Notes: generated from the sequence alone by a model not told the origin. 64,000 nucleotides of DNA from Oikopleura dioica (GCA_907165135.1 OU015570.1:2191929-2255928), one strand, 5' to 3'. Positions 4,005-49,533 are shown, counted from the stretch's first letter. Numbers and translations: made by a program.

Positions 4005-4905
4005 GTAACCGGTGAAAATAATTCGTTGGAACGAATAATTCGTTTTCCTAACGAATAATTCGTTACATACCGAATAATTCGTTGTTTCCTAACCCTGACC
4101 CTAACCCTAACCCATGAACCCAACCCTAAACCTAACCTAGCATTACAACTACCTAACTGCTTAAATCAGGGTATGTTACATACAGTTCCCTTCCTCTTTT
4201 GTGGACATTTTTTGTCCCAAAATTTTCGAAAAATGTCCACAAACTTGGGCAACGTCTTCCGAAAAAATGTCCCATCGAAATCGATTAAAATTTTTTTTCG
4301 AGATTTGAGTACGCCGAATGGTTTTCTAGACTTTGCATTTATGCTCCTGAAAGACTGACAAAGGCCCCTTTGTCTCTAGTTCAACCTTTAATTTTGTTTT
4401 TTTTTCGTAAACAATGAACAACTCGATCTTGATTAGCCGGAATTAATCTCACCACAAAAAAAAATTGTCTTTTTTATTTCTTTCCGCGAAAAAATGTCCA
4501 CAAACTTGGAACATCATCTTTTATAAAGTGTCCCACTTAAAGGCCTAAAAATGGAAAAAATGTCCACAAACTTGGGGTCCACAAAAGAGGAAAAAAACTG
4601 TACCGTATGTATGCGCTCCGCGCCTGATTTCAGAGATAAGCTCCTTTTTTAGTATACTAAAAGCATATGCTGTCTTTCTTTCAGCCACGCCTTTAGTCAG
4701 TTTTTTTTTTATGAAAAATAGAGTTGTGAACCAAGCGGGAGGATAGCCTTTCAAAACGAATAATTCGGTATTACCGAATTTCGGTAACCCTAACGAATTA
4801 TTCGTTTTAAACGAATTATTTTTACGGAAAATAGCTGTTTTCCCTTGAAAATAATTCGTTAGGGCAACGAATAATTCGTTGCAACGAATTATTGTCACCG
4901 GCGAC
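4005..4905. mobile_element. MITE with aataattcgtt subterminal repeats and a (CCCTAA)n-like tract, hosting a nested MITE
   Basis: Imperfect TIRs gtaaccggtgaaaataattcgttg / caacgaattattgtcaccggcgac, with many aacgaataattcg copies at both ends. Confidence 0.7.
4183..4600. mobile_element. TA-flanked Tc1/mariner-type MITE (tgtccacaaa motif family, diverged member)
   Basis: TA-CAGTTCCCTTCCTCTTTTGTGGAC...GTCCACAAAAGAGGAAAAAAACTG-TA. Shares the internal tgtccacaaa motifs of the 7006, 26087 and 46180 copies. Confidence 0.75.
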
Positions 4906-5313
4906 GCTTCCATAAGGTCTGATCAACCGCAAGACCTCTCAAAAGCGTTACAGAGCAAGTGCTCACTTAATACAGCGCCACCTAGCAAGGGCTCTCGCGC
5001 CCCACCTGGTGGCAGGTCTCTAGCGTCACCTAGTGGACACTCAGGTAAAGCTAGGCCACGGACGTTAAAAAGACGATTTTCACCATCGGGTCATCGCACG
5101 GGAACAGGAGTGGGCTCATTCGAAGGTCTTGATAGGGGCTATTTATTTGACCGATAAAAATACTGGGCCCTCCCTTTCTGTTATGAGTTATTTTGAAAAT
5201 ATTTTTCGAAGCTTACATTCAAAATCAAATATCTCGAAAAAGGAGGACAGGGCCCAGTTTTTTATAAGCTCAACAGAAAGCCCTTTTTAAGAGCTTACGA
5301 ATGAGCCTACTCT

Positions 5314-5900
5314 TGTTACCGTACGACGACCGGCTGGTGGTGATGATTTTTTACGTCCGAGGCCAAGGTATAGCTCTCTACTGCCCTCTAGTGGCCCCAC
5401 AACAGCGCCATCTATGGTGAGCACTAAACCTTGCATTCCAACGCATTGAGTCACTAATGGTTACCTTGATGTGTGGGAGACAACTTCACAGATGACTCTC
5501 GTGCGGGAGACAACCCTGGATATGAGTCATCATTACATCACCTGGCAGAAGCCGCTAGAAGATTCCATCCAGCATGAGTCACATTGACTCACCAATTACA
5601 GCACCTTGGAGAATCAACACGATTGTTCTTCTACTGTCTTAGAAGCAACCTGAATATTCTATAACTGTTCTAAGAAGCTTCTCGAACATTCTTATTTTCC
5701 TTTTTCACTGTATAAAAAGGCGACTTCTGTCACAATAAAATCATTCTAACCAGAACCAACGAAACAACAAAAACTTCTCTTTTTATCCAGCAACAACATC
5801 AAGCAACAACCAGCAACTAGCAGCAACCAACCAGCAACTATCAGCAACCAACCAGCATTTACCGCCAACCAACCGGAAAATAGCAATACCTCTACAAATC
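5314..5900 (+). repeat. Possible LTR-like or promoter-bearing fragment, right end truncated
   Basis: Starts TGTTA, with tataaaaa near 5711 and aataaa near 5733 followed by C/A-rich repeats. I found no partner LTR or PBS. Confidence 0.25.
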
Positions 5901-7005
5901 TTTTCGCCGCGGCCACCCTACGTTCCCAAATAAGGAAGGTGACGCATCGCACGCTGAAAGAGCATCGCGCCACTCATTTTTGCATTTTTTAAGCCTTTTT
6001 TCAGGGGATTACAGACAAAAAACGCCCCATTACAAAAAATTTTATCTTGAATCTAGCTTAAATTAGGCCGAGAATTACGGGAGTGGGATTAAAATTTTTC
6101 TATAACTTGTTCTTCGTAGTTTTCTATACATTTAAGGCTTGTAACTCGTCAATCCTTATTTTTTGCAAGGGTAAAATTATGCTCAAAATATTCATTTTCT
6201 AAAGATCTAAAAGTTTTATGTTGATGAAATCATCCAAAAATCAATATTTTAAGAGTTATATTTTTTGTGGAATAACCTTATATATTGATGAAAGAATAAG
6301 ATTTTAGCCTTGAAAAGGGCTTGGTTCTCTAGACTCGCAAATTGCGAATCCAGAAAAAATATGCGTCGCGACGTGACCAGCGCCAAGAAAAATCGCTGGC
6401 AAAGGGTGCAGCAAAGCCTCAATCATAAAGGGTGCATTACTTGCGCAATCCACTGAACTGCGTTTGTTTTGCTTCTCTCAAAATATCTTATATTTTCTGT
6501 TTAAATAAATCAACAATGTCAAGCGGTTAAATATATTTTATATTCCATTCGTAAGGCTGAAATAGATTCAATGTGCTATGGTGTCAATGTGTCAGTTATT
6601 TAATCCTTAAAGGGTATTGCCTCCAAATCGCCAGGAGGCATCTCCAAGGAGATTAAGGCTTAAATGAGGAAAGTTTCAACATTAAAGAGTTTACTATCAC
6701 TGGTTGCTTTACATTAAGTTGATCGACGTCGAGAAAAATAAAAAGAGAAATCTCGAATTTTTTCTTTCAAACTTCAGCGTAAAGACTATACCTAGGCTTT
6801 GCATTAGAAAAATCGTAATTTTTTCTAGCTTTGCAGGGGTGTTTTTTTCAGTGGAGGTGAAAGAGCAGTGTCTATTTAGTCAAAAACCACTTTTAAAAGA
6901 AAAATAAAATTGGGGAAAGACGATTTTCGGGGGATCAAAATCGGGATGTAGGGCGCGTAGGGTCTGCAAAATGTAGACCGCGGGTCTGCACATGAAAAAA
7001 ATGTA

Positions 7006-7414
7006 CAGTTATTTATGGAATTTGTGGACATTTTTTGTCCCCTAGTTTTCTGAAAAATGTCCACAAATTTGATAATGAGCCTCGAAAAAAATGTCCCAAC
7101 GAACTTGTTTAAATTTTTTCCTAGAAAGAAAATTTGATGATTTTTCTCAAAAAATAATGAGAAAAAGAATACAAGATTGAATCTAAAGACGTAAATCTAA
7201 ACAAAAATTAAGATTTTTGACGAAAAACAGTTCTTTGCAGGTAAAATTGGCTTCAATTACGAAAGTAAGACCATAAATTTAGAAGTAAAAGATATCAATT
7301 GAGAAAAAATGTCCACAAAGTTGATACCCTCTTTTTTGAATATGTCCCAAGAAAACCCCTTATAATCTGAAAAATGTCCACAAATTTGATGTCCACAAAT
7401 TCCATAAAAAACTG
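7006..7414 (+). mobile_element. About 409-bp TA-flanked Tc1/mariner-type MITE
   Basis: TA-CAGTTATTTATGGAATTTGTGGAC...GTCCACAAATTCCATAAAAAACTG-TA. Near-identical to 26087..26496 (inverted) and 46180..46587. Confidence 0.9.
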
Positions 7415-8303
7415 TATTTTCATTGAACAGGCGCTTTGATGCGCTGCGCGCCTCATCTTAGAGTAAGCTTCATCTTTGAACATTTCTAAATAAAAACGGG
7501 CCAAAAAAGCCAAAATTTTGCTCGTCAGTGCAGACCCAGGGTCTGTTTTTGCAAACTCCGGGTAGGGCAGCCCTACGCGCCCGACAAGAGCGTTTTTGCG
7601 TATATTGTTAAAATGTTGTTCTCTGCAAGAATTCCATCTTAAGAGCGTTTTTAAGATTTTTATTTATAATTAAAAAATTTTCAGACTCACAGTGAATCAT
7701 CAATTCAAAAATTTTGTAATCTTCGACTGCTTTTCTGGCCATTTCAAAGTCAAAGGTTTTGCAGTGTCGGTGCTCTCTATTACTTGAACTTGAGGCTCTT
7801 CTTCAATCTCCCTCGGGGTCGCGGCTTGTATTTCATCAATTGGAAGCGCGAGGAAATGCTCGACCAGATTTTCCTCCATCATTCTTCTTTCGATAAAGCT
7901 CCATCACAGCCTTTCTACAATCGTTTTGGCGCCTTCAGAAGTATCTGCGCATATTTTTTTTTCTTTGCCAAGGAAATGTGAATTCTTTTCTCTTTTCCTG
8001 CCGTCTTTGCGGTAGAATTAAATTTTGAGGAATGAATGAACTAAGAATCATGAAATGCGCTCAAGCCCAATTCTGGAAAAATGATCTGATCTCGAAATAC
8101 AATTTTTCCAAAGAAAAAATGGAAAATCCCACTGACATCCTACCTTCATTGAAAATTTCCCAACTTAACAGCGATTTAAGCGAGGCCCGGAAGACCGTTA
8201 TACTGGAAGACAGGTTGCTGGAAGACAAATATTAAAAAATTAAATAGAAATGAAAAATGAAGCCTTGATTAAGATGTAACTGTCATATTTGGCCATTTAT
8301 TGC

Positions 8304-8581: not shown

Positions 8582-10616
8582 CATTTATTGCCGGAGAACC
8601 TCCCTGAGGACCCTTCTGCTGGAAAATAGGTTGCTGGAAGACAAAAATTTAAAAATTGAATTCAAATGAAAAATGAAGCCTTGATTAGAAACTTACTGCC
8701 ATATTTTGCCATTTATTGCCGAAGGACCTCCCGGAAGACTCCATTTCTGGAAGACTAATTGCTTGAAAATCAAAATAAAGAAAACATCAATAATGAGCCT
8801 TAATTGACCACATGTTCCCATGGACCCCTCGGGTGGAAGACCATAAGCTCCAAGACCAAAAGATTTGGTCATCCGGGATGTAAAAATAGATTTGACTAAA
8901 ATAAGCCTGTATAAAATAAAATAAATAAAGGAGAAATTTTATAACGACTGAGGTTAAACGAAAAATATAAATTTAAGGCATATTATCTCATTGAAAAGCG
9001 AAAAAGGCAACTTTTTGTCAAATTTAATTCCATTCAGTCTGAATCGGGGCCAAGCCAACCCAAAAGGGCGCCAACCCACGTTTATTCAATTCAAGCCGAC
9101 CCGAAGGGGAGGCCAGCCCATTTATTCAATTCAATCTAGTGCAGGGCCAAGCCGACCCGAAGGGTCTTCTGAGCTTCCCTTCTCTTCGGCTCGGCGTTTC
9201 ATACTCAATTGAAAAACGGGGCTTGTCTCTTCTTCAGGTCGGCTCGGTCATGGTCCAGACTGTATTCAACAAATGGTTCTGGCCTCCCCTAGCTTGACCT
9301 CTAGCTTGACCTTGCGTAAGACTAGATTGAATTAAGGGCAATTGTTGAAATCGGCGCTATGCTCCCCTCTCGATTCGCGCACTCCGTGACTTTTTAATTG
9401 ATGCTTTCAAATCACCCCTTGGCGTTTTTGTCCCAGCCAAAATGTCCTCACCGCTTTCTCACTTTTGACCAAAGCAATGGCGGAACTAAATAAAAATATT
9501 TTTGGTGCTGTTTTATCTAACATGAAGTTTAAAATATAAATTAGCCCCTGGTCCCTCCTGGAGGGGTTGGGGACTGAACCGGCCTATGTCAAGCCCCTTA
9601 ATTTAAATTTGCCAGGGATGGGGCTGAGAATTGAAAAGTTTTTTAATGAATAATTTAAATTTTTTTAATTTCTAATCGTTTTGATTATTATTTTATTAAA
9701 AATCATAATGAGTTAGGTTTTTTATGTGAATTAATTATTATTATTCAGAATTATCATTTTCTATAAAATCAAGAATAAAGAGTTTAAATTCTATTTAAAA
9801 TAATAAATTATCTTTTTTATTTTTAATTCATTTTTCGACGCTGTATTTTTCTTCTTACGCCGCGCTCACCCTACGACTTCCAAATAAGGAAAGTGAGGCG
9901 CTGCACGCGCGGCGCGCCGCAAAAAGGCTCATTCTTGAGCTTTTTTCTCTAATTTGAGCATGTTCTCCTCGTGTTTCAAACTTTTTTATTGAAGATTAAA
10001 ATAAAAATACCCCTTTTTACATAACTTGAAATTATAAAATTTTTTGAAATCGATGGAGAAGGCTATTTTTCAGCCTGTTTTGGCGATTTACTCCTCAACC
10101 CTTTTTCAAAATTTATGAAAAAATGTTTTTTTATATTTGTTTAGGGCATCCAATTAACCCCTTAAAATTTTAAATCATTTACTTGATGGACAAAAAAGTT
10201 AGAATTTTTGTGTACGGACCCTACCCATTACCCAATTTTTTTAAATTATATTTATCTGCTCGAAAATGTTTAAAAATTATTCTTCTTCCAGCAAGAATTT
10301 GTCTTCCACCAGTGTTAAATGAAGGTCCTCCAGGCGATTCCTGATCGATCAGAAACCCAAGCACTAAATTTTTTTCTTCCAGAATGATCAGAATTTCAAG
10401 GCGCATCGATTGAGAGTTATTTCGTTCTCATAGCTCGGTGCGTTCGGAAAATGGCATTTTCGGTGATTTTAGATGGCGCTAGAAATTAACACCATGATCA
10501 TTGGGAATTTTTCTTTTCGAAAATGTCATTCATGTAATTTGGACATATGTGTTACAAATTTTTAGCCTCCTACGACCATCCAGTAAAAAGTTGATTTTTT
10601 GTAAGTTTACCCTAGT

Positions 10617-11335: not shown

Positions 11336-14300
11336 CGTGGTATGGGCTGATTCTTCGGCAAGGCCGAAGAATCAATGTCTGCAATTGCTCTGATTCTTCG
11401 GCTAAAATGCCGAAGTATTGATGCTTTTATTAACACTGATTCTTCGGTATCTCGGTCTGAGACCGAATAATGACTGGAAAATAATACACTGATTCTTCGG
11501 CAAAATTATGACGCAATATTAAAAATCTCGAGATTCGTTATTTCTATCATCTGCAAATCTTGTGACTAAAGCAATCTAGAAATTTTCCTCTATTAAAAGT
11601 CAGAAATCTTCTCTCATCGCTCATTCTTTTTCTTGCAGATAATCTTTATAAATGCAATATGGATGATATTATTTTTATCGAAATAAAAGAGATTGTGAGG
11701 AATAACAAGGACTATCCTTCCATCATAATTGTCGAAGGTGATCGAGAGATCTTAATTCACCAGAAATATGCCTTGTCCTCCTTCATTACTTATGGATGTT
11801 CCGGCGAAAACTGCCAAGTCACGTACAAAGTTCAAGTTATGGTTCAATTTTATATGTATGAAATAAGACTTTTTCATTTTATTGGACAATTTTTGAACAT
11901 TTTAAAAATCGATCAATCTATCTCGGAAAGAAAACACTATATCCGATTTAGAAAAAAAGATGATGGAACGCCCTATCAAACGAATGAGTTCAAGACATTG
12001 ATCGTCCGAAATTCGAACACATTTGATCCTTCAAAATACCATATCATTCCTGTCGCTGGTGGTGCTCACACATGTGGCAATCACATCACATTGAGAATTC
12101 GTGTTAAAAATTCTCTTAAACAAATTCTTAACGAGAATTTTGAAAGGTTTTTGGAGTGATCATTTTAAATTTTTAAAATTTTTCAAGCTTGCGACACAGT
12201 ACTGATACGGAAATCAAAATGCTCTGTCATCGTAAATTGTTGGAGCTCTTTTCCGAAGATGAGTTTATTGAAAATTTCCCTGCTGACAGAGAGTTCTTTG
12301 AAATGATCCGATTTCTCCGACGAAAATACGAGCTTGAGCGTCAGGAGATTGATGATGTATCGAACTATGATTTTTCTGAGTCAGGAAATGAGCTCGAAAA
12401 AATTCATGAAAAAAATAAAGGAAGAGAATCGTATCTTCTTTCGTTTTGCGAAGCTTTCTGTGAGCTTTGACACAGATCTTTGTGAAAATGGAAGAAAAAT
12501 CATGCATCCAGATGCAGAAACAGGAGTGATTTATTTCTACAACGAAAAACTCATTCGAAAACTTCCTTCTCAATATCAGTCGATTCTCGTAGGTAAGTGA
12601 CAATTTATTAAAAATCAACTTTAAGCTTGAAGTATTCTTTATAATTTGAGGCTAGTGTTAGGGGCACTGGGCAAAATGACAGAACAAACTTACCCGAGGG
12701 GGATAGGCTAGGGTTAGTTAGGGTTACCGAAGGTAACCCTAAGTAACCCTAGACTAGACCCCGGCATCTTAGGACCAAAGGGGCGAAGCCCCGTGGTAAG
12801 GGGCAATTGGATTTGAAAATTTTCTGCTGAAAAGTAGGGGATTGTTCTTCCCCTTCAAATATTAATTATGCTCCTAGATTTCTTAAGCCAAGAAACACCA
12901 GACCATCGTTAACCCTTTACAATTGAAAAGCCTTCTTTCCATGGCTATTATTTCTCTCTTGAGCAAGTTAAATTTCCCTTCCGTCTATTTCAAAGGAACG
13001 TAAACACGCGAAAAAATTCGATCTGCGCGCTCTCTTAATTTTTAATTTTTGTTATGGCAGAGATAGATAAAATAGAATACGAGAGATGCTCATTGTTTTT
13101 TCGCGGTTTAAAAAGAAAAGAAATGTATTCTGATGATCAGAATCTTGCTATTGACTAGGACTATGACCGAGTAATTAGGTTAAGAGCAATTTAGAAGAAT
13201 CTCTTTGTTGCCTGCAAAAATCAGCTTAAAATCTTTCGATTCTTGCTGTTTTTTTATTTCAGCTAAGGCGAATTAAGAAAATGATCTCGAGGAGAAAATA
13301 AAACCTGGGTTCCATCTCGCACAAAGCTTTTTGGTGGCGGATAAAGATTGGTAATTGATTAACTTGTCACTTTATAAAGACGCTCAGAACGATAGTACAG
13401 TCAGCTTTGACTTAAACGCATCTTTTATGTTGTGTTCTGATAAGTTTGATTGACTTAGCTTATTTGAGTGATTTCATGGTGAAGTTTCAATTGAAATTGC
13501 AACTGATAACTTACATCGTTGAGTTTGCTCTTTACGCTTGCAGATTGCATGGGAAGTGTGGAAAGATTTTGAATATTCGGAAAAGGGAAAAAATTCCTTT
13601 TTAGAAATTCATCAAATTTCTTGTCACCCTCATTTGATCCTTTTTCTCTGAATAAAGAACTGCCGTTTCTGGCATATTTTAAATCAGAAAATGACTCGAA
13701 CGAAGGTCGACGAAGGTCAAGATTTATTAGGCCGGAACTCTGACCAGATACAGCAGATGTTGGCCAGAATGGCTTTAACTAGAATCTCTTTAGTAGCAGT
13801 TTATGAATACTTGGCATGAGTCTGTGCGCTAGTAGCTTGCTCCATAAACGAAATTATTGCGCCAAAATCGCAAGAGTGACTCATTCTAGGTACAATAGGC
13901 GATAAGTATAACAAAGTCGTCTGATTATTATTAGCGAAAGGAATATGCCCAGGCTTATTATCGCACGAGTCGTTAAAATGATAAAAACGGGACGATTAAT
14001 AATAGTCATACATCAAACTAGCAATTTATGATGGTAAACCATTAATCTGCACAAATTGCAGAATGAAAATTCTTATTAATTATTTCTCTAAATAAACGAC
14101 CACTATTAGCGTGTGGTCCTTTTTCCCTTCAATAAATTGACAATTTTGATCGAATGTGTTTTCGAAAAATGATCTTTTGGAAAAAGTAATTGTTCAAGAA
14201 GCGTCATTTTTGGAAATTTTCCGGAAGCGAAACCTTTGTTGAACCCCTCTTTTTGGAGACACTTTTTTTACCGCGCGAGTTGTAAAATAGATATTCGGAG

Positions 14301-15901
14301 GGTTTGCCTAGTAAAGCCGTTTTTGTCGTGCTCGACTGCACTGGGTACTTTTTCGATTCCCTCGGTTCATCAATTTGCCTCATATAAACGTAAAGCCCCA
14401 TTGAGATGTAACTTTTTTGCTGAAGATTACGAGAGTTTTGAAGAACATGCATGAAGAAGCAAGATAGTGCTAGACCGTGCATGACCCCCATTTTTGATAG
14501 ATGAATAGTCGAATTATCAATCATCGGTTGCGGAGTTAACAGATTCATTTAAGATGGTTCTTTGTGGACATTATGGCGAGGTCGCTTCAAGCAATGCTTA
14601 TTTGTTCAAGCAAAGATCCATGATGAAAATGGCTCAATGCAAAATTGCGTCATATATGCGGTTTTACATTTCTACAGGACGTTTGAAGAGTACAACATGA
14701 TTTTTACGAAGCTTAATGAAATTCATTTGTCCATCAAAGGTTCGAAAATGTATGGGTCAATTTTGTGTACAGATTCTGAGCCTGCTCTTTATTCAACTGC
14801 AGCAAATCACATTGATGGTATTTATACGCAAAATTGTTTTTTCACTATACAGCTAACGCTCGAAAGATTTTAATGCTGACAATCATGATGACTTGATTGA
14901 GAATGTGAGCTTTCAGAATTTGTACACTTGTATTCGTTCTCTTCCTTTTCTTCCACATGAAAGGATTGTTTCCTTTCTCGACTTTCTTCTTGAAAAATTC
15001 AATTCGATGATCTTTGTCGAGATCGTCTGAAAAACGACGAGTTGCGTAAAGCAAGTGAGAAACTCATTAAAAATATCGAAAACGGTTTGCCACCGACGCA
15101 GAGCGTTTGAGTTGGTACAAGCCTCTTAGTGAGGCTGATATCTTCCTTGATTTAACTAGTAATACTTTAGAAAGAAGTAATCAGGAGTTTCGAAAAATTG
15201 TTGCCAAGTCCCATAAGCGTCGGTGTATTGATCGCGTGTTTGTGTTGAAAAGTTACATGTATTTCCGGAGTATCGATTTTTGACCAATTTGGGTCGTAAG
15301 GCCCATATTGTGTCAGCAGAAGCACTGCAAAATCATAATTACAGAAAGCACATTGTTGACACTATTCGATCATACGAGGGCGAAATGGACTTTCAGCAAA
15401 TTTTCAATCTCATTACTAATTCCTAAGTAATGACCTCTGAATGCTTGAATGAGATCTGAAGACTTCATCCTTTTTTGGCCTACCCTTCTCTCATTTTTTT
15501 ATTTTTCTTATTGAAAATGATACTTTTAAAAAGGTGACACCCTTTTTCTTCTGTCTCTACCGCTGTACATAATGACTGGAATAAAATCAATTGAAAAATA
15601 TTTATTCAATAAAATCTCGAAACTTACTTATTTTTATTTGATTTCTTAGAGCTAACGAATTTTTTAAGAAAAAAACAGAATTTTTGAGAAGCCGAAGAAT
15701 CAGTGAATAAGAATTATTCAATTCTTCGGTTGTAATTATCCATAGCCGAAGAATCAGTGTTTTTATATCATCTATTCTTCGGATTCTTGCCGAAGGATCA
15801 CTGTATAAATAGTCATTAGTTCTTCGGCTTTGCCGAAGAATCAGAGTTCTAACACGCATCAATCCTTCGGCCCCCAAGCCGAAGAATTAGGCCGTATCAC
15901 C
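11336..15901 (+). mobile_element. Degenerate 4.6-kb MULE transposon
   Basis: TIRs gtggtatgggctgattcttcggc / gccgaagaattaggccgtatcac, built from repeated attcttcggc motifs. GATTAAAT is duplicated at 11328-11335 and 15902-15909 (8-9 bp TSD). Internal transposase remnants. Confidence 0.8.
11659..15420 (+). pseudogene. MULE transposase remnant, fragmented and probably intron-containing
   Basis: ORFs 11659..12159, 12189..12600 and 14562..14873. The last reads DGSLWTLWRGRFKQC...LCTDSEPALYSTAA...NCFF and aligns by eye with the remnant at 255..611. Confidence 0.7.
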
Positions 15902-18301
15902 GATTAAATAATTTGTTGAAGGAGTTATAATTTCAGCCAAGCCCTCTCTTTTCTCACATTTTGCGATTCCGAGGTTCAAACTCCGAAATGAGTACCTGCA
16001 ACGTTCAAACTCCGAGAGTACCTGCCAGTTAGTGGATCGAATGTGAGCTAACCCTTTCTTTTTCGCTTTTTGTGACTCCGATGTTCAAACTTTAATATGA
16101 GTACCTGCAATGTTCAGACTCCGAGAGTACCTGCAAAAATGGATCCAATGCGAGCCCTTTTTCCGCATAGGGTCGGAATTTATATAGTGCTGGTTACCTT
16201 AATTTCTTTGAGAAGTCTCGAATTTTATCATATTTAAAATTTAATTTTTAATTATCTTATGCTCTCGTGACATCCTAAAATAGGACTGTTTTAAGCCCAT
16301 TGAAGTAAGTTTGTCAATTCAAATTAACTGTGCGACGCCTACCTCAGACGGATATAAAGGAGGAGACTTTCGACTGAATTTGAATTTTGCTAATGAGAAT
16401 TCATGGCCTTAAACCTTGAAAATTATTAGTTTATGCTACACTTACTCTACTCTACCATGTGTTTAAACTTTGATTTCTATTTCCTCGAACTCGTTCGTGG
16501 TGCACTCCTATTCGAGAAAAGGGGAGAGCCCAGCCTCAACTTTTAGTGCGTCAAAAAATTGTGCCTGGTCACCTTAACTTCCCTTTTTTTCGTTGCATTT
16601 ACGGATTTGTTCTTTTCTTTCTATGTTTTCTTCAAAGTGCTACTGTTTGTTCTTTCTGATATCCTAACCTTGACCTCTGTTATAAAGCAGGGGAAGAGTA
16701 TAAGGTTTCGGTAAACCTTACGTTTCATGTCTCATACGTAGTCATGGGTGAATACACATGAATGCGACGCGGTATTCCTTGTACCACCGGTTTCAAAGGT
16801 AGCACTATCCACTCAGCCACACTTATTTGCTTGGCAATTACATTTATAAGGGTATATTGTTACTTTTTCTAGAGAAAATTTCAGCCCCGTCCCTTGATTT
16901 TTAACTTAAGGAGCTTGACTTCTTCCATATTTATCGGTCTTCCAGCAAAGTTAATCTTCCATTGGAAGAGTCCTCCGGAACAGGAGGGTTCTTCAAGGCC
17001 ACGTGGTCAAAAAGTGACCGAGAAATTCTATGTGTAAGACTTAATGCCAGTGATTATTTGTCTTCCAGCAAAGAGGTCTTCCAGCAAAGAGGTCTTCCAG
17101 TAGAAAGGGTCCTCCATAGGTCCTCCAAGAGGTCACGTGGTCGAAAAACCTAATTGATAAGAGTTATCATAGGTTCAACCTTCGGTCTTAGTCCTGGGGT
17201 CGGAGGACCTTTCTGTGAGAACCCAGTCAAACTCACTCCGCCCACGCAATTTTTTGCAATGCAAATTTTGTCCAAACGATTTGATCGCCTAGGGGTCGGT
17301 CAGTCAGGAATGATAATCGCGGTATCTTTAACCCGTTAACAGGCGCGTGGCAGTCAGTAGCCGAACTTGGGAACATGTTGACAATTAAGGCTCATTATTG
17401 ATGTTTTCTTTATTTTAATTTTCGAGCAATCGGTCTCCCAGTAAGGGAGTCCTCTGGGAGGTCTTTCGGCAATTAATGGCCAAATATGGCAGTAAGTTTC
17501 TAATCAAGGCTTCATTTTTCATTTCTATTTAATTTTTAAATATTTGTCTTCCAGCAACCTATCTTCCAGTGGAAGATTCCTCCAGGAGGTCCTCCGGAAC
17601 AAACTGAAGATCATTTATTTTTATCATGAAAAATAATGGCGAAAAATGGCTTAAAAATGGTGTGTTTGGACCTTTCTCTTAAGCAGAGTATGGTGGTTTT
17701 ATACTGAAAGTAATTGGAACACGGGAATCAATCTCGAATATGTTTATTATTCCTGATAGGTGTGAGCAGAAAATAGAAAATTATAAATATATTATATTTT
17801 ATGTTATACCTGTGAAATCAGGGAAAAAATGATAAAATTATAAAGGTACAGTCGCTTTTATAGTGTAGGACACCACCCATCGGTGGCACGGACTTAGACT
17901 TGGTCGTATGAACTCGGCGTTGGCCATATCGCCAACGCTGGAATAGAGAGGGGCGAGCTGTCAACTGAGCATAATTATGTTGACCACGCGCGCTAGAATT
18001 CCATATTTGTATAGTAATCACGCATAATAAGATATGGTAAGAGGAATATTCCCGAGCACGCGCGATAACTAATACATGGGTATGGTCAAATTAGCAGGTA
18101 GTTTTTGGCAGATTTCAACAAAATATGCTAAATTGACCATTTTCTCAAAAAATTTCCGAATTTTGAGATCAGAATTTTTAAATCATCGAATTTGGCACTA
18201 ACAAAGAAAAGGAACAATAAAGATATGACGAGACACGAAATGAGTGAATAATATAGTATCGTTCACCAAAGGAAGCGATTTTTTGGGTAATATGCGGTCA
18301 A

Positions 18302-18471: not shown

Positions 18472-19091
18472 GTTCGTGCTTTTTCGAAATAGGATATTTT
18501 TTGGTAGGGAACCCAAACTAACAATAGACTAGACCCCGGCATCTTAGGACCTAGGGACCGAAGCCCCCAGGTAAGAGGCACACGACGACGCCTGTCGCAG
18601 GAAAAAATATCTCCCAGTTCAAAGATTCTTGACCGCGGTCAATGGGAGAAAAAACTCCTATTTCGCAAAAGTACGAACTAGGAGATAAATCTCCTATTGA
18701 ACGCCTACAACCATTTTTTGGAGCCAATAAGATTGCTTTATTTGGCCTACCGGCCAATCAAGACCCTATCCTGGATAAGCTATCCATCAAAATCATTCCT
18801 TTGGTATCACGTACCGTGGGCGAGAGATATCACGACGGAGTCTGAGGGCCCGGGCCGGGGTTTTGAATATTTCGCGCACATTCAAGTATTTTCCCATGCC
18901 TGATGGAGGACTCTTATCTGGTGGAAGACCCAATTGATGGAAGATAGGTCTAACCTAGACTCTTTAAGATTATTTAATCTTTAACTCATAAATAGATAAT
19001 AATTTTAAAAAATCTTGATCATGTGACTCTTGGAGGACCCCTGGAGGACCTTTTCTGGTGGAAGACCGGCCTTCCTGGAAGACCCTTAAAA

Positions 19092-24630: not shown

Positions 24631-25039
24631 CTTGGGTAGTATGTAAGCAAGTGCTCATCACCTACACACTACCTAGGGGAAATATAAATGAGCTTATTCT
24701 AGGGATGAAGGGCGGGTGAGAATTTTGAGAGTTGCATAATTCTCGGCTTCGCGAGTTTGGATACTCTCAAAATTCTCTTATCTTTTCCCCTAAGAATATT
24801 AAAGCCCTTGGCTATAATTTTCGGAACTGCTTTGCGTGAGTACCGGACAGCCGCTTAAATGACTCGCTCTCTCACGCCCGTATCACCTCCCAATTTTTTT
24901 CTGGGTCATGTCGTCTCCCTGGCTGCTTATCCGAGTCTACTAGCGCTTGAACTGATAATCCGAATCCTATATTACGAAGCAAAAACAGTAGGAAAACCAC
25001 TACATATTTTCCCCTTTTCATTTTTGAAGCGAAGCGTCC

Positions 25040-27330
25040 GTTAAGCGTAGAAATTTTTATTGTTCTTTAATTACATTGTAAGTCCCAAACATTTTCTGGT
25101 AGAGAATTGTGCTGGATGGAGTTTACGACTTGTAGAGATTCCGAATGTGAAATTTCTGCATTATTGATTCGATAAGTCGAGTTATTGTGAGCAAGATCAT
25201 TTTTGAAAATTTTGATGTGAGTCCTCGCGTATCTGAGCTGGTCGGAAAACGATTTTGAATCGGCTTCTAGAAATTTGAAAGCGATCCTTGAGGTTTAGTA
25301 TCGTTTTTCATAGATTCTTTGAAATTGTTTCATCAATTCGATGCGAGTGTTTTTATCGACCAAAAGCTGATAGAGAATTGCTGTCTTGATTGACTGTCAT
25401 GATTTTCAAAAAGCGATTCCTGAAATTAGTTCATATCAAAGTGAAAGTGATCTTTAAGGGACTTAACTTCGTTTTTCAATTCTTGCAAAAAATCGAGCAG
25501 TGACTGCAAGTTTTCTTTCGAAATTGTATTCGGTAAGAAGTGAATTGGAATAGTGACATCAAAGAGAGCAGAAATGATAAAGCGTTGAATAAGCCGCTTT
25601 GGAGGAGCGTCGGTGAGCAGGAAGAAGAAAGGTCATTTTCGCGCTTTTCTCTTCTTTAAAATGAGTTTGGGACCAACCAGTACTCCTTTCAGAACATATT
25701 TTTCTGAGGCTAGAATACGCCATCGAGTGGATCTTCCAGACGTTGTGAGGTCATTCCGATGTCCTCTAGTGAATTTTCGTGACCAGTGAGAAGTAGTCAA
25801 AGTCGTGAGTTGGGCCTTTCGTGATGGATATTCTCTGTCTAATTCTTTCCCCTTTTTATTTTTGGGCGAATGATCTTCACGAGCAGGAGATCGTCAATGA
25901 GCGCCAAGTGTTGAGTTTATGATCATCACGAGCAGGTGATCTTTCAATGTGTACCTGTGATCGGAGCAGTAATCTAGTAGAACTGAGCAGAGATTACAAT
26001 AAGAACTAACAGCGAGTTCTTATTCGAAGAGAGTGTGACACAATGAGCGATAGAAAATTGTGAACAGAGCTATGAGATTGTGAATACAGTTTTTTATGGA
26101 ATTTGTGGACATCAAATTTGTGGACATTTTTCAGATTATAAGGGGTTTTCTTGGGACATATTCAAAAAAAGAGGGTATCAACTTTATGGACATTTTTTCT
26201 CAATTGATATCTTTTACTTCTAAATTTATGGTCTTACTTTCGTAATTGAAGCCAATTTTACCTGCAAAGAACTGTTTTTCGTCAAAAATCATAATTTTTG
26301 TTTAGATTTACGTCTTTAGATTCAATCTTGTATTCTTTTTCTCATTATTTTTTGAGAAAAATCATCAAATTTTCTTTCTAGGAAAAAATTTAAACAAGTT
26401 CGTTGGGACATTTTTTTCGAGGCTCTTTATCAAATTTGTGGACATTTTTCAGAAAACTAGGGGACAAAAAATGTCCACAAATTCCATAAATAACTGTAAT
26501 TTGCTTGTGATTATAATATTTAAGCAAATGTGAATAACAAATACCCTCTTGTGATAAATTTAGAAGCAAATGAGCGATATTGCTGCCAATAAAAAAAAAA
26601 TTAAAACTTTTAGGCATGTGATTATAATGTAGAGCAATAGAGCGAAATTGCTGTGAACAGAACGATAGACTACTTAAGCGAGATTAAGTTCGTGAAAGTA
26701 TTGTTATAGGGATTATATGGCCTACGAGCAGGGCGTGAATAAGAATTGATAAAGAGTACTTACCCTATTCTGAAAAATTTGTAAGCTATTGAGCGAAGCT
26801 AAGAGCGGAACTTGTGAGTTAAATGCCTTAGTATTCATAGATGGACTTTCTGTGTGTGATTTGGGCAACTGCACCAATTGCCAAATGAGGCTGGACCAAA
26901 GTTCGGAAAAGAGGCCAATTAATAAGTAAATTAGCTGGGTCATGAGAACGAAAATCCACAGAGGCCTGCATGTAAACTTCGTAATAACGATCTGGTTGAG
27001 CATTACCAGTAAGCTGGATTCCCATTTGAGCTTGATCGGGGGAGTTAGTATTCTAGTGAGCCAATTTCCAGTTGTGCATTGAATCGTTGAAGTTGTGAGG
27101 AACCAATTAAACAATTGACATCGATGTTGTGTGAGCAGGGCTTTAGACTACAGTGTGAGCGAGCAATTCAAATATGAGTGAACGGTGGCTAGATATTGGG
27201 AACGCATATCTGATCACCACCACGTCGTGAAAATTTGACGATTTGTGAGCGAGATAGTCGAGCAGCTATCTGTGAATAAGGTCGAGTTATGAGCAAAACT
27301 TCTAGACCATTATACGGATTAGTCGAGCAG
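25040..27330 (-). pseudogene. Degraded coding region downstream of pol, possibly env-like, of the minus-strand Ty3/gypsy element
   Basis: Frameshifted coding-like text on the pol strand (ORFs 26722..27114 and 26828..27025, plus a helical stretch near 25400-25640). No diagnostic motif; the call rests on position. Confidence 0.3.
26087..26496 (-). mobile_element. Tc1/mariner-type MITE, inverted copy of 7006..7414
   Basis: TA-CAG...CTG-TA, same internal sequence reverse-complemented. Confidence 0.9.
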
Positions 27331-33125: not shown

Positions 33126-33858
33126 TATCTCCTATCGTGATGATTTTGAGCGTGTCCATACCAAGAGTAATTGGACATGATAAGTTCTGAACTATCAGCG
33201 GGTTCAGTTTCAGCTTGAGCGGTGCTGATGATTACTCAAGTGTGGCCTCAACAAGTGAATCGAGCGTCTTCACTGTTACGAATTTTAGAATTCGCACACT
33301 TAAGAGTGATATTTGACGGTTTTTGATGGATGGATGCAGGAAGAAAGGCGAGAACATCTGAGCGGATGCATAATCTTCTGCAACCAAAATCAATGAGAGC
33401 GGGTAATCGGAGTCCATTAAACAAGATTTTGACATATTTAAGGCTACGGGTATCGATCAGGCTACGTTTGAGGCCGTATTCCTGACAACATGTAAATGGT
33501 GGATGGTTTCTAATCATTTTCAGATAAAGAACTATCCTAGATCTTAATTTTGTCAGAAGGAAATTATCTTCAGTGTTGACCTCTCATAATGATTTGATTC
33601 GTAATTTATTTGTGGTACGCGTTTCGGCGACTATTGTGCCTTCATCAGCCCCTAGTACAGATATAAATTTCACAGCTCAGAAAAATGAAAGAATACTCTC
33701 ACCTAGAGTTGGACAATTTCGAATGAGATTGAAAGTTGAAAACAAAAGATGAAAACTCGCTTTCGCGGCAGATGTAATGGAGCGCCAGAGAAAGCGAGTT
33801 TCAAAAAAATGTTCCCGAGTTTGCCTGTTAAAGAAATAAGCAAATTAATTGTAGATCA

Positions 33859-34357
33859 GTATAGTAATCACGCATAACAAGATATGGTAAGAGGAATATT
33901 CCCGAGCACGCGCGATAACTTATACTATGGATGACTCTTAGCAGCCTTAGAGTCTAGGTTATGGCTTGGGTAGTATGTAAGCAAGTGCTCATCACCTACA
34001 CACTACCTAGGGGAAATATAAATGAGCTTATTCTAGGGATGGAGGGCGGGTGAGAATTTCGAGAGTTGCATAATTCTCGGCTTCGCGAGTTTGGATACTC
34101 TCAAAATTCTCTTAACTTTTCCCCTAAGAATATTATAGCCCTTGGCTATAATTTTCGGAACTGCTTTGCGTGAGTACCGGACAGCCGCTTAAATGACTCG
34201 CTCTCTCACGCCCGTATCACCTCCCAATTGTTTTCTGGGTCATGGCGCTGTCGTCTCCCTGGCTGCTTATCCGAGTCTACTAGCGCTTGAACTGATAATC
34301 CGAGTCCTATATTCGTATAGTGATCACGCATAACTAGATATGGTAAGAGGAATATTC
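33859..34357 (-). mobile_element. B-A-B terminal unit of the tyrosine-recombinase element family
   Basis: A 43-bp direct repeat gtatagt(a/g)atcacgcataac(a/t)agatatggtaagaggaatattc at 33859 and 34315. The first copy is extended into a hairpin ending at 33925. Same layout as 44687..45170. Confidence 0.75.
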
Positions 34358-44686: not shown

Positions 44687-45170
44687 GTATTATAATCACG
44701 CATAAATAACAATGGTAATGGGAATATTCCCGAGCACGCGCGATTACAATACTGTAGCGGGGAAGCTTTAGAGCTTCTTAGGTTGAGGACTGGGCAGTAT
44801 GTAGGGCGTGTGCTCGTTTACCCTAATTGTACTGCTTATTTCAGGGATGGTGGGTGGGTGAGTCTTTTTGAATCAGGTAGGAGTCTTATTGGTAATGCTC
44901 CAGCTGAGAAAAAGTCTCTTAATAATTTCCCCGTTTAAGGTTTGAGCTTCAAGCTATAACCTTTTTGGAATGAACCTGCGTGATTTCGGGGCACCCGCTT
45001 GAATAAAGATACTCTCGAGCGCCTTTGACACCTTCCGCTGCTCCCTGGGAGTTTCTGCTGCTGCTGAAGAGGCTATCCTGCCGCGTTCTATTTTTGGCGG
45101 GCTGCTTATCCCTTGTCCTAGGTTCGTATTATAATCACGCATAAATAACAATGGTAATGGGAATATTCCC
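44687..45170 (-). repeat. Split direct repeats and terminal hairpin directly downstream of the tyrosine recombinase
   Basis: gtattataatcacgcataaataacaatggtaatgggaatattccc at 44687 and 45126. The first copy continues to gcgcgattacaatac (44752), complementary to its own 5' end. Confidence 0.85.
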
Positions 45171-45269
45171 TCCCTACCATTTTCGTTATTCTCATCAATT
45201 GTTAATGAGTCACCTTTTATATTTGAGTCTGAATTCTAAGTGAAAAAGGCATCTTTCTTTTAGGCTTCT

Positions 45270-46170
45270 TCAGTTGTATTTTTCGGCTTCTTTGGCTTTT
45301 GACTTGCTTCTGGTCGTTCTTGATTCTAAAGCCTTTCTATTGATTCCTGGAATCCGAAATATCGATACCTGTGGATGGTCACTGCTGGTGCTATCATTTC
45401 GTTTTCTGGCTCTTGATTTTGCGACGCTGACCGGTGCTCCTGAAGTGCTGCATTCGAACCAGCATCTTTCGTAGTAGTTTGGCATGGAGCTTCCGGGAGC
45501 CCAGCGGAGCGTGTGGGCGAGAGTCTTTTGTGAAAAGCCTGTCCGGCGTCCTTCGATGTAGAAACTGACTCTTCCTGTATGCGCAGAGACCTTAAAAATT
45601 AATCTTGAGAATCTCTTTTATTTCACGAAATCTGTACCTTTTTTGAAAATTTTGCCTTGGATTCGTAACGCGCCTAGTAGTCCGAGGCGATGCGAGTGTG
45701 ACCTTCGAGAATTTTGAGTACGAGGCCTGAATTTTAACTGGCGAGTCTTGAAGTAAGGAGTACTGGATACCTGAGTCTCGGTATTTGAGCTGGGCTCTGA
45801 GTTCAAGGGCGAGAGGGACTCCGTGTCTCATATCCATGGGGATGGTAAGGGTTTCCATCCGCTTGCAGAACGGGTCGGTTTTGCTGCTCCTGATGTGGAA
45901 ACGCCAGAATTCGTTTCCGTCCTTGGTGACCACTTCTCGGACTTCGACTCTCAAGTTGAGCGTTTCTTTCATTCTTGCCCCCGTCGTGAAGCAGATGAAG
46001 AAAGCGATGGCCGCTTCTCTTGGTTTTGGTTTGTTCGTTTTTAGAAGCTCTCCCAGAGTCGGACTGCCTCGGGCTCGTCGAAGAGCCAAGTCATGGTTCT
46101 TAAGGTTATAAATGTGACTCTTTTTTTTGAAAATTCTGATGATGGGCTATTTGGAAATTTCAGCAGTTTG
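45270..46170 (-). pseudogene. Tyrosine recombinase of DIRS/Crypton type, frameshifted, with a 117-nt interruption
   Basis: FTTGARMKE (catalytic R), RSSKTDPF (K), HSHRLG (HxxR) and LRWAPGSSMPNYY (W and Y). Frameshifts near 46040 and 45770; the N-terminal part is missing. Confidence 0.9.
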
Positions 46171-46179
46171 AAGCAGCTA

Positions 46180-46587
46180 CAGTTATTTATGGAATTTGTG
46201 GACATTTTTTGTCCCCTAGTTTTCTGAAAAATGTCCACAAATTTGATAAAGAGCCTCGAAAAATATGTCCCAACGAACTTGTTTAAATTTTTTCCTAGAA
46301 AGAAAATTTGATGATTTTTCTCAAAAATAATGAGAAAAAGAATACAAGATTGAATCTGAAGACGTAAATCTAAACAAAAATTAAGATTTTTGACGAAAAA
46401 CAGTTCTTTGCAAATAAAATTGGCTTCAATTACGAAAGTAAGACCATAAATTTAGAAGTAAAAGATATCAATTGAGAAAAAATGTCCACAAATTTGATAC
46501 CCTCTTTTTTTGAATATGTCCCAAGAAAACCCCTTATAATCTGAAAAATGTCCACAATTTGATGTCCACAAATTCCATAAAAAACTG
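46180..46587 (+). mobile_element. Tc1/mariner-type MITE, copy of 7006..7414
   Basis: TA-CAGTTATTTATGG...CCATAAAAAACTG-TA. Confidence 0.9.
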
Positions 46588-46608
46588 TATAAATTTTTTT
46601 AAGGAGTC

Positions 46609-47959
46609 CTAGTAATTTGAGAGTCTGGGTTGGTTAGTTTGAAAGTCTTTGCTGTTGAGCTTTCTGGTCTTTTTCCGGTGGCGGTTTTTATTCAACTCCG
46701 CCCTGGTCCTGGAATTTCTTGGTTTCGTTTCCGGAGCTGCCTCCTCCTCGACCTCGGCCTCTTCCGCGGCCTCCCGAGTCGCTGTCTCTGTCTCTGGATT
46801 TTTGCCGTCCCCTTGGTGGTCGGTTTTTTGTTTCTTGGGTTGGCCACCGTTGTTGTGGCCACCTCGGCGTCCTCGACCTGTTTTTGAGTCTTTTTCTGAC
46901 CGCCAATCCTCGGAGCCATCGCAAGGATTGCCGATCATCTTTTTGAAGACGTGGTGATTGGAGTTCATTGTGAGGACCCGGTCGAAGCTTTGTCGGACAT
47001 TGGGGCGCATGAGTGGCTGAAAAGATACTTCAGGCAGTGTGGCTGCTTATTACGAGTCTTACCGTGAGCGAGAGCAGGGCATCTTTTCGAGTCATATCAG
47101 GCATCCTGATGAGTTCGTCCAGGATGCTTTCGATGATTGCCCGCTCCGGGTATTCTGGGAAAATGGCTCTTTTATAGTTGCCCAAGAGTCTCACAAGCTT
47201 GTCCTTCTTGAACATGCGCTGGTTTTTTGCGTCTGAGACGAACGCCCGGAATTCTTTGCCCATTTCCCGGAGAGAGTCGCCGTCGTCTTCAGGCATATTG
47301 CTTGTGCCTATTTGAGTCTGACGCGCAATTTAATTAGAGAGTTTTGGACTCGGTATATTTCATCAGCTTGAAAAAAGGGGTTTTTGGCTTACCATGAAAT
47401 AGGACTCTTCTCCCGTGAGCGGGTCAACTTCTTTGAAGACTGCCGAAGTGTCCGTGCCGCCCGAAGATAGTTCGGCAATTTTGGATTCTCGGGCCTTGAT
47501 CTGCTGGAACATGGACCCTTGATGCTGTATCGCTCCATCTTGTCCGCAATCAGACGGCGGATTTTCGCCTTCTACTCCGCCGGATTCCAACGGTCGTAGA
47601 ATCTGTTGTCTTCTTAGGACCGTTCTTTGGCGTTTGGCTCGTTTTCCTTGATTGCAAGACTCTTCTCGCGGTTCGCTTCTAGTTCCGCGATTTCCGACTA
47701 TAAAGCGCGGAGTTTTTGTCGATTTCGCTTTTACGATGAGGGCGTCAGTGAACTTGTCGTGAGTCAGTATGTCCTTCTTGATGTCCTCGATTTCCATAAA
47801 GAGTCTGTCCGCTTCTTCCGATGGTGTCTTGGACTGGGCGATTTCAAAGAACTGGGCCATCGAGATTTGGACTCTGGCTGCTCGCGTTTTTGCCTCTTGC
47901 TCAGTGAGTTTTGTATGGTCTGCCAGCAGCTTGGAGAGGATCTCGGTTTAATCCGACAT
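46609..47959 (-). pseudogene. Three-exon gag-like ORF (about 400 aa) with a basic RGG-rich C-terminus
   Basis: Exons 47959-47393, 47317-47063 and 47016-about 46650. Phase-0 GT-AG introns of 75 nt (47318-47392) and 46 nt (47017-47062) join three ORFs in frame (YFM|TQIGTSNMPE and LSLT|PLMRPNV). TAA at codon 4. 'Gag-like' rests on position and composition only. Confidence 0.7.
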
Positions 47960-48110
47960 TTTCACAAAGATTTCGAGTCTGAACAAAAGAAAGGTTTAAC
48001 GCAGGCGATCCTCTTCCGCATTTTAGTGGGGGATTTATGGAGAATCTATTTGGCGCGAGGAGGCCGAGTTTCGAGTTTGTAAAGACATGATTTGTTAGGA
48101 AGGTCGTCAC

Positions 48111-48616
48111 TTCCAACCTTTCGGGATCCCGAATGTTTCGGGATTTCCCGAATCTTTCAGGAATTCCCGAACCTTTCGAGATCGCCCGAATCATTCGGGA
48201 ATTTTGTTGAGGATTACGTTATAAAAAAGTGGTATAAATGCCGAATTCGGGCATTTTACTTATCAAAAAGATAACTCTAGCTGCCTTCGTCAAATTCGAT
48301 GGTCTAAAAAGGCCATACCTTGTTTCAATTGTGAATTTGCAGTCAAAGAGAATGTGTGCGTTCCGCGCCTGTCTTATAGAGAACTTCATGAGTTATAAAT
48401 CAAATTATTCGTTTAAATTATTTTTTCCTTCGTGCCTTCATTTGCTTCAATAAAGATGTACTTAGACGTTACTATTTTGATAGATTCGCTTTAGATATTT
48501 TCTCGGACAGAAATCATTCAAAAATCATCCCCGAAAGGTTCGAAGACAAAAAGGCCCATTTTCACTGCGAATATTTCGGGAAATCCCGAAACAATCGGGA
48601 TCCCGAAGGGTTGGAA
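48111..48616. mobile_element. MITE with tcgggatcccga palindromic subterminal repeats
   Basis: ttccaacctttcgggatcccga...tcgggatcccgaagggttggaa. Confidence 0.75.
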
Positions 48617-48678
48617 GATTCAACCTGTTAGGAAAAGGTTGATGATGCGAGAGAAATCGACAATCTTGAACCCAGAGT

Positions 48679-49380
48679 CTAAATGCCTCCTGCTTCCGGC
48701 TTTTCCTGACGTGGCCTTTTCGTTATAAAGATGTTTTTTGGGTCTTTGAGCTTCATGAGGCTATCTTTGGAGTCGTAATTGCCTTGGAATAGAATCGCCG
48801 ATGACTTCCATGCCTCCAAGACTGAGTCAAAAACCTGTACAATGGTGTTTTGGATGCTCTGGATAAGTTCAGAGTCCATGGATGAAAGATTTTGGGTCTT
48901 AAAGGCCTCCGAGAGTCGGGTGTACATTTGCTGCCATTCATCGCTGGCGTTGTTGATTCTGATTCTTTCCCCCACCAGATCTCTCTGGTAGATTCCATTT
49001 TTGGACATGCAGGATTCTGTGCATTGTTGCTGACGGAACTCTTTAATTTCTTGAGCCTCTTGGTGTCTAATGCACCAGGCTGATTTCTCTTTGGCTTCCT
49101 TGCAGAAAGGCCACTCGCAGGACCTCTCTCTTTTTTCCGGTTTTTGATGTCGGAACTTTAGACGCGTCATTTTTGAGACCTTTTCCCTTCTTTTTATCCA
49201 AGCGTCGGCGAAGCTTTTCAGGATCATGTTTGGGCTGAATCTCTTCCCACACCCCAACATCCAGCCTGTTGTCAGGATTCCCAGGTTTTGTTCCAGAGAT
49301 CGGAATTGAGGGTAGGCTTTGGTGTCTCTGACTACCTTCCCGATGATTTCCGGGATCGTCTTTTGAGTCGAGAAACGGTT
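48679..49380 (-). CDS. Unknown ORF (over 230 aa) with a C-x4-C-x9-C-x2-H motif; 5' end cut by a MITE
   Basis: ORF 48679..49416 contains CEWPFCKEAKEKSAWCIRH. Its annotated start lies inside the 49385..49533 palindrome. Confidence 0.5.
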   Translation of the reverse strand, partial: NRFSTQKTIPEIIGKVVRDTKAYPQFRSLEQNLGILTTGWMLGCGKRFSPNMILKSFADAWIKRREKVSKMTRLKFRHQKPEKRERSCEWPFCKEAKEKSAWCIRHQEAQEIKEFRQQQCTESCMSKNGIYQRDLVGERIRINNASDEWQQMYTRLSEAFKTQNLSSMDSELIQSIQNTIVQVFDSVLEAWKSSAILFQGNYDSKDSLMKLKDPKNIFITKRPRQEKPEAGGI

Positions 49381-49384
49381 GTAG

Positions 49385-49533
49385 GCGGTTTGGTGGGATT
49401 TTAATCCTGCGAACACTGAAGTGCCTGTCGTGGCATTTTTAATCCCATGAAATGAAATATGCTGTCGTGGGTTTTTAAAAATCCCACGACAGGCACTTCG
49501 GTTGTCATGGGATTTTCAATCCCACCAAACCGC
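49385..49533. mobile_element. 149-bp palindromic MITE
   Basis: GCGGTTTGGTGGGATT...AATCCCACCAAACCGC. Confidence 0.75.

Follow-up and report, generated by a model that had tools for sequence, protein, structure and literature searches.

An intron-bearing tyrosine-recombinase element lacking reverse transcriptase in Oikopleura dioica is very probably a decayed copy from a family of large DIRS-order retrotransposons

The genome of Oikopleura dioica (assembly OKI2018_I69; PMC8008620) contains, within a stretch of 64,000 nucleotides (nt) (OU015570.1:2191929-2255928, hereafter the window), a minus-strand element which combines a tyrosine recombinase, intron-bearing genes and split direct repeats with an apparent lack of reverse transcriptase (RT). 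We consider it very probable that this element (window positions 44687-49374) is a dead remnant from a family of tyrosine-recombinase retrotransposons of the DIRS order (PAT-like), ~14.5 kb in size, that bear introns and are copied via unspliced RNA. Elements copied through RNA are expected to lose their introns, and a reading of this DNA from its sequence alone (the sequence-only reading) had proposed two alternatives: an intron-retaining retroelement whose RT was deleted in this copy, or an undescribed RT-less family of tyrosine-recombinase elements. The former is upheld, as seven full-length relatives carry a pol gene at the position of the deletion scar and have introns at conserved positions, and the apparent lack of RT in the window copy results from the deletion of ~8.1 kb including pol. 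The latter is refuted because the RT-less form is single, has no A1 repeat, is cut at both ends of its ORF1 (the first open reading frame, ORF) and carries broken genes.

The 40-nt spliced leader of O. dioica has 49 exact matches against none for its reversed control, and this result, together with the names of matching proteins, led to the rejection of a nematode (Panagrellus) origin. Genome searches with each half of the locus recovered seven full-length elements of 13.9-14.7 kb each, and no relative closer than 84% identity to the window copy was found. A size of ~14.5 kb is large for a DIRS-order element. The 45-nt repeat at the 3' end (B repeat) occurs 16 times genome-wide, corresponding to eight elements, namely the seven full-length ones and the window copy, which is the sole defective member among those sharing this repeat. 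The family has the layout A1 ... B1-A2-spacer-B2, and its genes are arranged in the order ORF1, a multi-exon middle region, a 403-residue ORF, pol (with RT, RNase H and methyltransferase-like domains), ORF2, and the tyrosine recombinase. Comparison with a full-length copy on chr1 (C4:3347004-3361513; loci L041 and L045) resolves the window copy into three collinear blocks:

44687..49374, minus strand: whole remnant, 5'-truncated, internally deleted and decayed
49374-48692, minus strand: alignment block 1, corresponding to positions 4345-5024 of the chr1 full-length copy (inside the 998-residue ORF1), 72% identity
47994-46594, minus strand: alignment block 2, corresponding to positions 13211-14664 of the chr1 full-length copy (ORF2), 79% identity
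46084-44684, minus strand: alignment block 3, corresponding to positions 15094-16514 of the chr1 full-length copy (recombinase and 3' end), 84% identity
47995..48691, minus strand: scar of the ~8.1-kb deletion, where homology to the full-length copy ends near 5024 and resumes at about 13130-13211

Homology to the relatives stops exactly at the common 3' terminus, and three segments are gone from the window copy: the initial 2.3 kb including A1, ~8.1 kb from the middle of ORF1 to just before ORF2 (a loss that took the last part of ORF1 together with the middle genes, the 403-residue ORF and all of pol), and ~345 nt, so that exon 2 of the recombinase now begins directly after codon 4 of exon 1. 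The scar of the second loss consists of ~100 nt of unalignable sequence, into which a miniature inverted-repeat transposable element (MITE 1) has been inserted, and the missing 8.1 kb is where complete copies have the RT/RNase H pol gene (YLDD motif, Pfam RVT_1). No remnant of RT is present in the whole 64-kb window, in agreement with the absence of RT motifs noted in the sequence-only reading, and no second copy with the same deletion was detected in the assembly. Both surviving genes (ORF2 and recombinase) are broken by in-frame stops and 1-nt deletions; the window copy is unable to make any of its proteins, and one of its termini is gone. Its RT-less state is therefore the private decay of one copy and not the property of a family. 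A foldback repeat with 40-nt arms (window 49403-49514) lies exactly at the 5' limit of element homology and may mark the event that truncated this copy.

The 3' end of the window copy is organized as follows:

45126..45170, minus strand: B1 repeat, 45 nt, an exact match to B2
44860..45125, minus strand: A2 repeat, 266 nt, delimited by comparison with full-length copies
44732..44859, minus strand: conserved A2-B2 spacer, 128 nt, the 3' end of which is the 5' arm of the terminal hairpin
44687..44731, minus strand: B2 repeat, 45 nt, the final base of which (44687) is the 3' terminus of the element

These repeats bear out the B-A-B end described in the sequence-only reading, with two exact 45-nt B copies flanking the 266-nt A repeat and the 128-nt spacer. 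The terminal hairpin reported there is likewise present: 18 base pairs are formed within the last 66 nt, the 3' arm being the extreme end of the element, and six lineages preserve the stem, in which one pair has changed in a compensatory manner and three other changes are compatible with wobble pairing. The B repeat opens with a perfect 12-nt palindrome, B1 folds with the sequence upstream of it into a further hairpin, and the repeat is nearly invariant (0-2 changes per 45 nt) among lineages that are otherwise 67-82% alike. The A2-B2 spacer is 124-131 nt long in all copies and is better conserved between lineages than introns or 3' untranslated parts. A search for the A1 repeat, suggested in the sequence-only reading, located it in all seven full-length relatives, and the window copy, from which it is absent, retains the 3' repeat part only. 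In the full-length copies, A1 and A2 (264-267 nt) are 99-100% identical, and these copies, with A1 equalling A2, are young. Element ends were set to the base by comparing copies with their flanks; in seven out of seven full-length copies the B1/A2 boundary consists of the last bases of B2 followed by the first bases of A1, and by the logic of DIRS-order elements it would represent an internal circle junction. No target-site duplication was found in the flanks of these seven copies.

Several further pieces of related sequence were observed. A small unplaced scaffold (C13) contains three copies of the A repeat (5563-5837, 10082-10356 and 18708-18982) together with a piece of ORF1, which may represent a nested or tandem array of the ~14.5-kb family. 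In the window, isolated tail pieces from a more distant lineage of the same superfamily are located at 33855-34357, 18005-18075 and 24696-24973 with no element body adjoining; one of them is a solo B1-A2-spacer-B2 block (~76% identical to copies at C1:10.11 Mb and C2:0.99 Mb), and the others are a B-like piece and an A piece, each standing alone.

The pol gene supplies the evidence that the family encodes RT. For domain and profile searches, exons were searched singly, and proteins from public gene models (P0001, P0018 and P0021) were used as stand-ins for the spliced products. RVT_1 is detected on the pol ORF, the d-lineage gene model P0018 lies above the cut-off at 50 bits, and PF00078 is annotated on the public pol protein P0001. 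In one full-length copy, the pol ORF shows 97% identity, from end to end, to the product of Oidioi.mRNA.OKI2018_I69.chr1.g887.t1, and the ratio of nonsynonymous to synonymous substitution rates (dN/dS) of pol is 0.04-0.07 across lineages. The C-terminal part of pol had no match to any Pfam family, and a structural model of this part (P0001:530-686, built from a 10-row alignment; mean predicted local distance difference test score, pLDDT, of 86.1) matches a cap-specific adenosine methyltransferase and the KsgA/Dim1/Erm adenine methyltransferases (E = 1.3e-4, template modeling score, TM, of 0.57). A YAFPP motif is conserved in it, and the model points to an adenine-N6 methyltransferase-like domain at the C-terminus of pol. 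At the overlap between the 403-residue ORF and pol (L045:546-649, chr1 copy, upstream of RT), a +1 frame change is present in all lineages and no GT..AG segment is evident; programmed frameshifting or a non-canonical Oikopleura intron could account for it.

Introns were compared among ten copies from six lineages, which are 53-82% identical between lineages. Three segments in ORF2 and three in the recombinase start with GT and end with AG in every copy having the site. The site is wanting in two cases: the window copy has lost recombinase intron 1 by deletion, and the two d lineages lack ORF2 intron 3. These segments vary in length (37-87 nt) and have 19-52% sequence identity, and the flanking exons are fixed in length (225, 306, 255, 294, 325 and 89 nt) with 63-75% identity; the spliced frames of ORF2 and recombinase have dN/dS values of 0.03-0.18 at a synonymous divergence (dS) of 0.8-3 between lineages. 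Comparison also revealed two GT..AG introns in pol, and a public gene model excises exactly these two and agrees with the genome elsewhere. Taken together, the segments are best interpreted as spliceosomal introns whose positions within pol, ORF2 and the recombinase are fixed, their splicing being inferred from comparison. The recombinase probably has a fourth intron, and ORF1 and the middle region probably contain further ones. A check of intron presence and absence, also suggested in the sequence-only reading, identified one case: two lineages show a precise absence of ORF2 intron 3, and exons 3 and 4 there make up a single open frame. The same reading had held that full-length copies with standard RT/RNase H and no introns would speak against it; the full-length copies do carry RT/RNase H, and they carry introns too.

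How such a family could be copied and still retain its introns may be explained by a programme resembling that of complex retroviruses, which we regard as somewhat better than an even bet. Under this proposal, an unspliced RNA of ~14 kb would serve as the template for RT, at least eight introns, some of them within the RT, methyltransferase-like and recombinase domains, would be spliced to give messages for at least five proteins, accessory proteins encoded by ORF1 and ORF2 would export or package the intron-containing RNA, and intron presence or absence would reflect rare copying of partly spliced RNA. In the reading that we hold very probable, the family's RT would copy full-length unspliced RNA, and host splicing of the same transcript would yield the mRNAs for the element proteins, as in retroviruses and Cer1. 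The ends of the cDNA would then be joined or resolved with the help of the internal B1/A2 junction and the terminal hairpin, and the recombinase would insert the product with no target duplication; occasional copying of partly spliced RNA could have produced the lineages lacking ORF2 intron 3.

Several points weigh against this proposal and against the reading of the window copy as its relic. No match to the element was found among the listed RNA runs, and in four O. dioica RNA-seq runs (three bulk and one single-cell), zero reads fell on the body of an intact copy, which provides no test of splicing, so that splicing is inferred rather than observed. The sole matches on that copy were 8 partial reads over ~30 nt of B2 (L045:6458-6488), running on both sides into unlike sequence; a B-like motif is transcribed elsewhere in the genome. 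Both splicing and the unspliced template would hence rest on comparison and on a public gene model that is ab initio or hint-based. Besides, the absence of ORF2 intron 3 could reflect either loss or gain, and RVT_1 on the lineage-I pol ORF alone scores 26.2 bits, just below the Pfam cut-off of 29.6, because an intron splits the domain. The placement of the parent family as DIRS/PAT-type rather than Ngaro, suggested by its predicted domains under the scheme of PMC4157794, is a placement by features. Finally, intron retention would be equally, and trivially, expected if the family moved as DNA. Such movement, with excision and integration by the recombinase, introns persisting since spliced RNA is never copied, and RT having another role, would account for the retention of at least eight introns without special RNA handling, and the recombinase is as constrained as pol. 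We nevertheless find it unlikely, given that purifying selection on RT/RNase H is strong in every lineage, that the terminal architecture is tied to RT-based replication in DIRS-order elements (PMC4157794, PMC7192593), and that the precise absence of one intron from two lineages is what copying of spliced RNA predicts.

Two other explanations concern the window copy itself. The combination of a recombinase, intron-bearing genes, a B-A-B end and no RT would suit an autonomous RT-less family, i.e., a DNA element resembling Cryptons that has ends of the PAT/Ngaro type as well as a gag-like gene. We give it almost no credence: this form is known from a single copy, the other B-repeat elements (seven of seven) are 14 kb long and RT-bearing, its ORF1 piece comes from the interior of a larger gene, it lacks A1, its two genes contain stop codons as well as frameshifts, and it has lost exon 1 of the recombinase. 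It might also be supposed that the window copy is a non-autonomous deletion derivative, once or still mobilised in trans by its full-length relatives, considering that its B1-A2-spacer-B2 end and terminal hairpin are complete with both B copies intact, and that its divergence from lineage I has been under selection (dN/dS 0.07 at dS 0.6). However, the deleted form occurs only once in the assembly, the circle-junction logic fails because the 5' terminus and A1 are absent, and decay after insertion is the simplest source of the deletions, which makes mobilisation in trans very improbable.

With regard to the individual genes, the tyrosine-recombinase gene recognized in the sequence-only reading is supported by its catalytic residues, GT..AG introns and homology to P0021. 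Its parts in the window copy are:

45369..46094, minus strand: recombinase pseudogene, defined by multi-copy comparison
46094-46083, minus strand: remnant of exon 1 (start codon and ~4 codons), directly fused to exon 2
~46084-45771, minus strand: exon 2, with a 1-nt deletion near 46051
45770-45727 and 45637-45591, minus strand: introns
45726-45638, minus strand: exon 3, with an in-frame stop at 45676-45674
45590-45369, minus strand: exon 4, carrying H-x-x-R, W and YY

In the family, the recombinase has at least four exons, and a further intron and a short basic exon after exon 4 are probable from the sequence. The residues R, K, H-x-x-R, W and Y, located in exons 2 and 4, are conserved. The recombinase exons alone are below the Pfam threshold (PF00589, E = 0.024), and P0021 matches PF00589 with 38.6 bits (cut-off 27.1). 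A profile of exon 2 retrieved just 26 relatives among 1.84 billion proteins, including P0021, which aligns to recombinase exons 1, 2 and 3-4 in order (E = 2e-34 for exon 2 and 3e-30 for exon 4). Profile searches with exons 2 and 4 against sequences from the PDB gave no match. A separately proposed 117-nt GC..AG intron at 45539-45655 was rejected, as it would excise the H-x-x-R box that is conserved in all lineages, and the comparative exon map places a 47-nt GT..AG intron (45637-45591) in its stead. In the public annotation, one element (L055, C1:10108000-10116500) has its pol, ORF2 and recombinase genes merged into a single 1159-residue "host" gene model, P0018, which uses the same recombinase exon junctions as the comparative map.

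ORF1 and ORF2 are represented in the window copy by the following features:

48692..49374, minus strand: ORF1 fragment, approximately residues 526-752 of 998, by homology to full-length ORF1
46688..47959, minus strand: ORF2 pseudogene, RGG-tailed, defined by multi-copy comparison
47959-47735, 47697-47393, 47317-47063 and 47016-46688, minus strand: ORF2 exons
47734-47698, 47392-47318 and 47062-47017, minus strand: ORF2 introns 1-3
47950-47948, 47616-47614 and 47574-47572, minus strand: in-frame stops in ORF2, accompanied by a 1-nt deletion near 47516 and indels in the RGG tail

An ORF with a Cys/His motif had been recognized from the sequence alone at the 5' side of the element. The motif, C-x4-C-x9-C-x2-H (CCCH-type), is indeed conserved in ORF1, and the open frame that carries it (49416-48679) is not a whole ORF but an internal fragment of the 998-residue ORF1. 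The second gene had been described as a three-exon gag-like ORF. Its GT..AG introns are substantiated, the exon count is four with three introns, and the term gag-like has no support from Pfam or the ESM Atlas. The two introns then proposed correspond to introns 2 and 3; intron 1 and frameshifted sequence had been read through, and recombinase exon 3 (45726-45638) had been skipped. ORF2 comprises 382 codons in the family, and its RGG tail suggests that the protein may bind nucleic acids. In searches against Pfam and the ESM Atlas, ORF1 had no Pfam match and only unnamed Atlas clusters, and ORF2, with the contiguous exons 3 and 4 of a d-lineage copy as query, again only unnamed Atlas clusters. 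ORF1, the 403-residue ORF and ORF2 had no match to any known family, gag and capsid families included, and the window copy's own ORFs gave nothing usable against Pfam.

The features that define the DIRS order, i.e., RT/RNase H, a recombinase and end-junction repeats without target duplication, are all present in the family, with RT absent in the window copy. In the scheme of PMC4157794, the methyltransferase-like domain in pol places the family with the DIRS/PAT type and not with Ngaro. PAT/Pat1-like elements have split direct repeats in the order A1-B1-A2-B2, and an "echinoderm-form" is distinguished in which the internal repeats are downstream of the recombinase (PMC4157794). The O. dioica family resembles them in having RT/RNase H, a methyltransferase-like domain and a tyrosine recombinase, A1 ... 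B1-A2 ... B2 repeats with an end-to-start internal junction and no target duplication, a Cys/His motif in the 5' ORF, and internal repeats downstream of the recombinase. It differs from them in the addition of the 998-residue ORF1, the multi-exon middle region and the RGG-tailed ORF2 between pol and recombinase, in the conserved 124-131-nt A2-B2 spacer, which is outside the textbook A1-B1-A2-B2 scheme, and in at least eight conserved introns predicted to be spliceosomal. Ngaro and VIPER elements are without a methyltransferase-like domain (PMC4157794), whereas the parent family has one. Cryptons share with it an intron-bearing tyrosine-recombinase gene and, with respect to the window copy only, the lack of RT. 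However, Cryptons never have RT and have no long terminal or split repeats (PMC3212892), whereas the window copy lacks RT owing to a deletion of its own and all seven complete relatives have both RT and split repeats.

DIRS1-like elements of O. dioica have been catalogued before on the basis of domain hits (PMC3266345, PMC5240408), with four sequences in two families (PMC3266345), and an earlier report is that of Volff et al. 2004, as cited in PMC3266345 and PMC5240408. They have the same host and the same set of RT, methyltransferase and recombinase domains and are probably the same or sister families, but size, split repeats, accessory genes and introns are not described in PMC3266345 or PMC5240408. 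No description of introns in DIRS-order elements was found in the literature searched (the 2004 Oikopleura retroelement paper was outside that search). The closest functional parallel may be offered by retroviruses and the Caenorhabditis elegans long terminal repeat element Cer1 (PMC10309623), in which an intron-containing full-length RNA escapes splicing to act as the genome while spliced RNAs act as messages. By analogy, the O. dioica family could work similarly, but retroviruses and Cer1 have one or few introns and an integrase, whereas this family has many small introns in catalytic domains and a tyrosine recombinase.

New here are the explanation of the RT-less copy, the termini defined to the base, the case of intron presence and absence, the fit to gene models, and the fold evidence for a methyltransferase-like domain. 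An apparent new class of elements, with introns and a recombinase and no RT, dissolves into the decay of one copy, and a false lead is thereby removed. What emerges instead is a retrotransposon family in which many introns of host type have stayed at fixed positions over long evolution under selection. A family with at least eight retained introns, some of them in catalytic domains, has to keep "genome" RNA and "message" RNA apart, which makes it a model, in an animal with a compact genome, for the way in which RNA that contains introns avoids being spliced and retained in the nucleus. It also bears on intron turnover in Oikopleura and on annotation, as genes of these elements are annotated as host genes in the public gene set, three of them being fused in one case.

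Two MITEs are inserted in the remnant:

48101..48626, unstranded: MITE 1, with 52-nt terminal inverted repeats, a 9-nt target duplication and at least 25 genomic copies of ~90% identity
46178..46589, unstranded: MITE 2, ~412 nt, in the spacer between ORF2 and recombinase, with 28-nt terminal inverted repeats and at least 30 genomic copies

The terminal inverted repeats of MITE 1 are rich in GGGATCCCGAA-like motifs. MITE 2 is the insertion that the sequence-only reading had recognized between ORF2 and the recombinase, and its extent (46178-46589) and repetitive nature (at least 30 genomic copies) agree with that assignment. It belongs to a young burst, 11 copies of which are 97-99% identical and located mostly on the 2.9-Mb scaffold on which the window sits, the older copies having 74-88% identity. 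This scaffold is probably the Y-specific region, in which transposons of O. dioica are concentrated (PMC5240408). Siblings of MITE 2 are present elsewhere in the window at 7004-7417 and 26084-26498.

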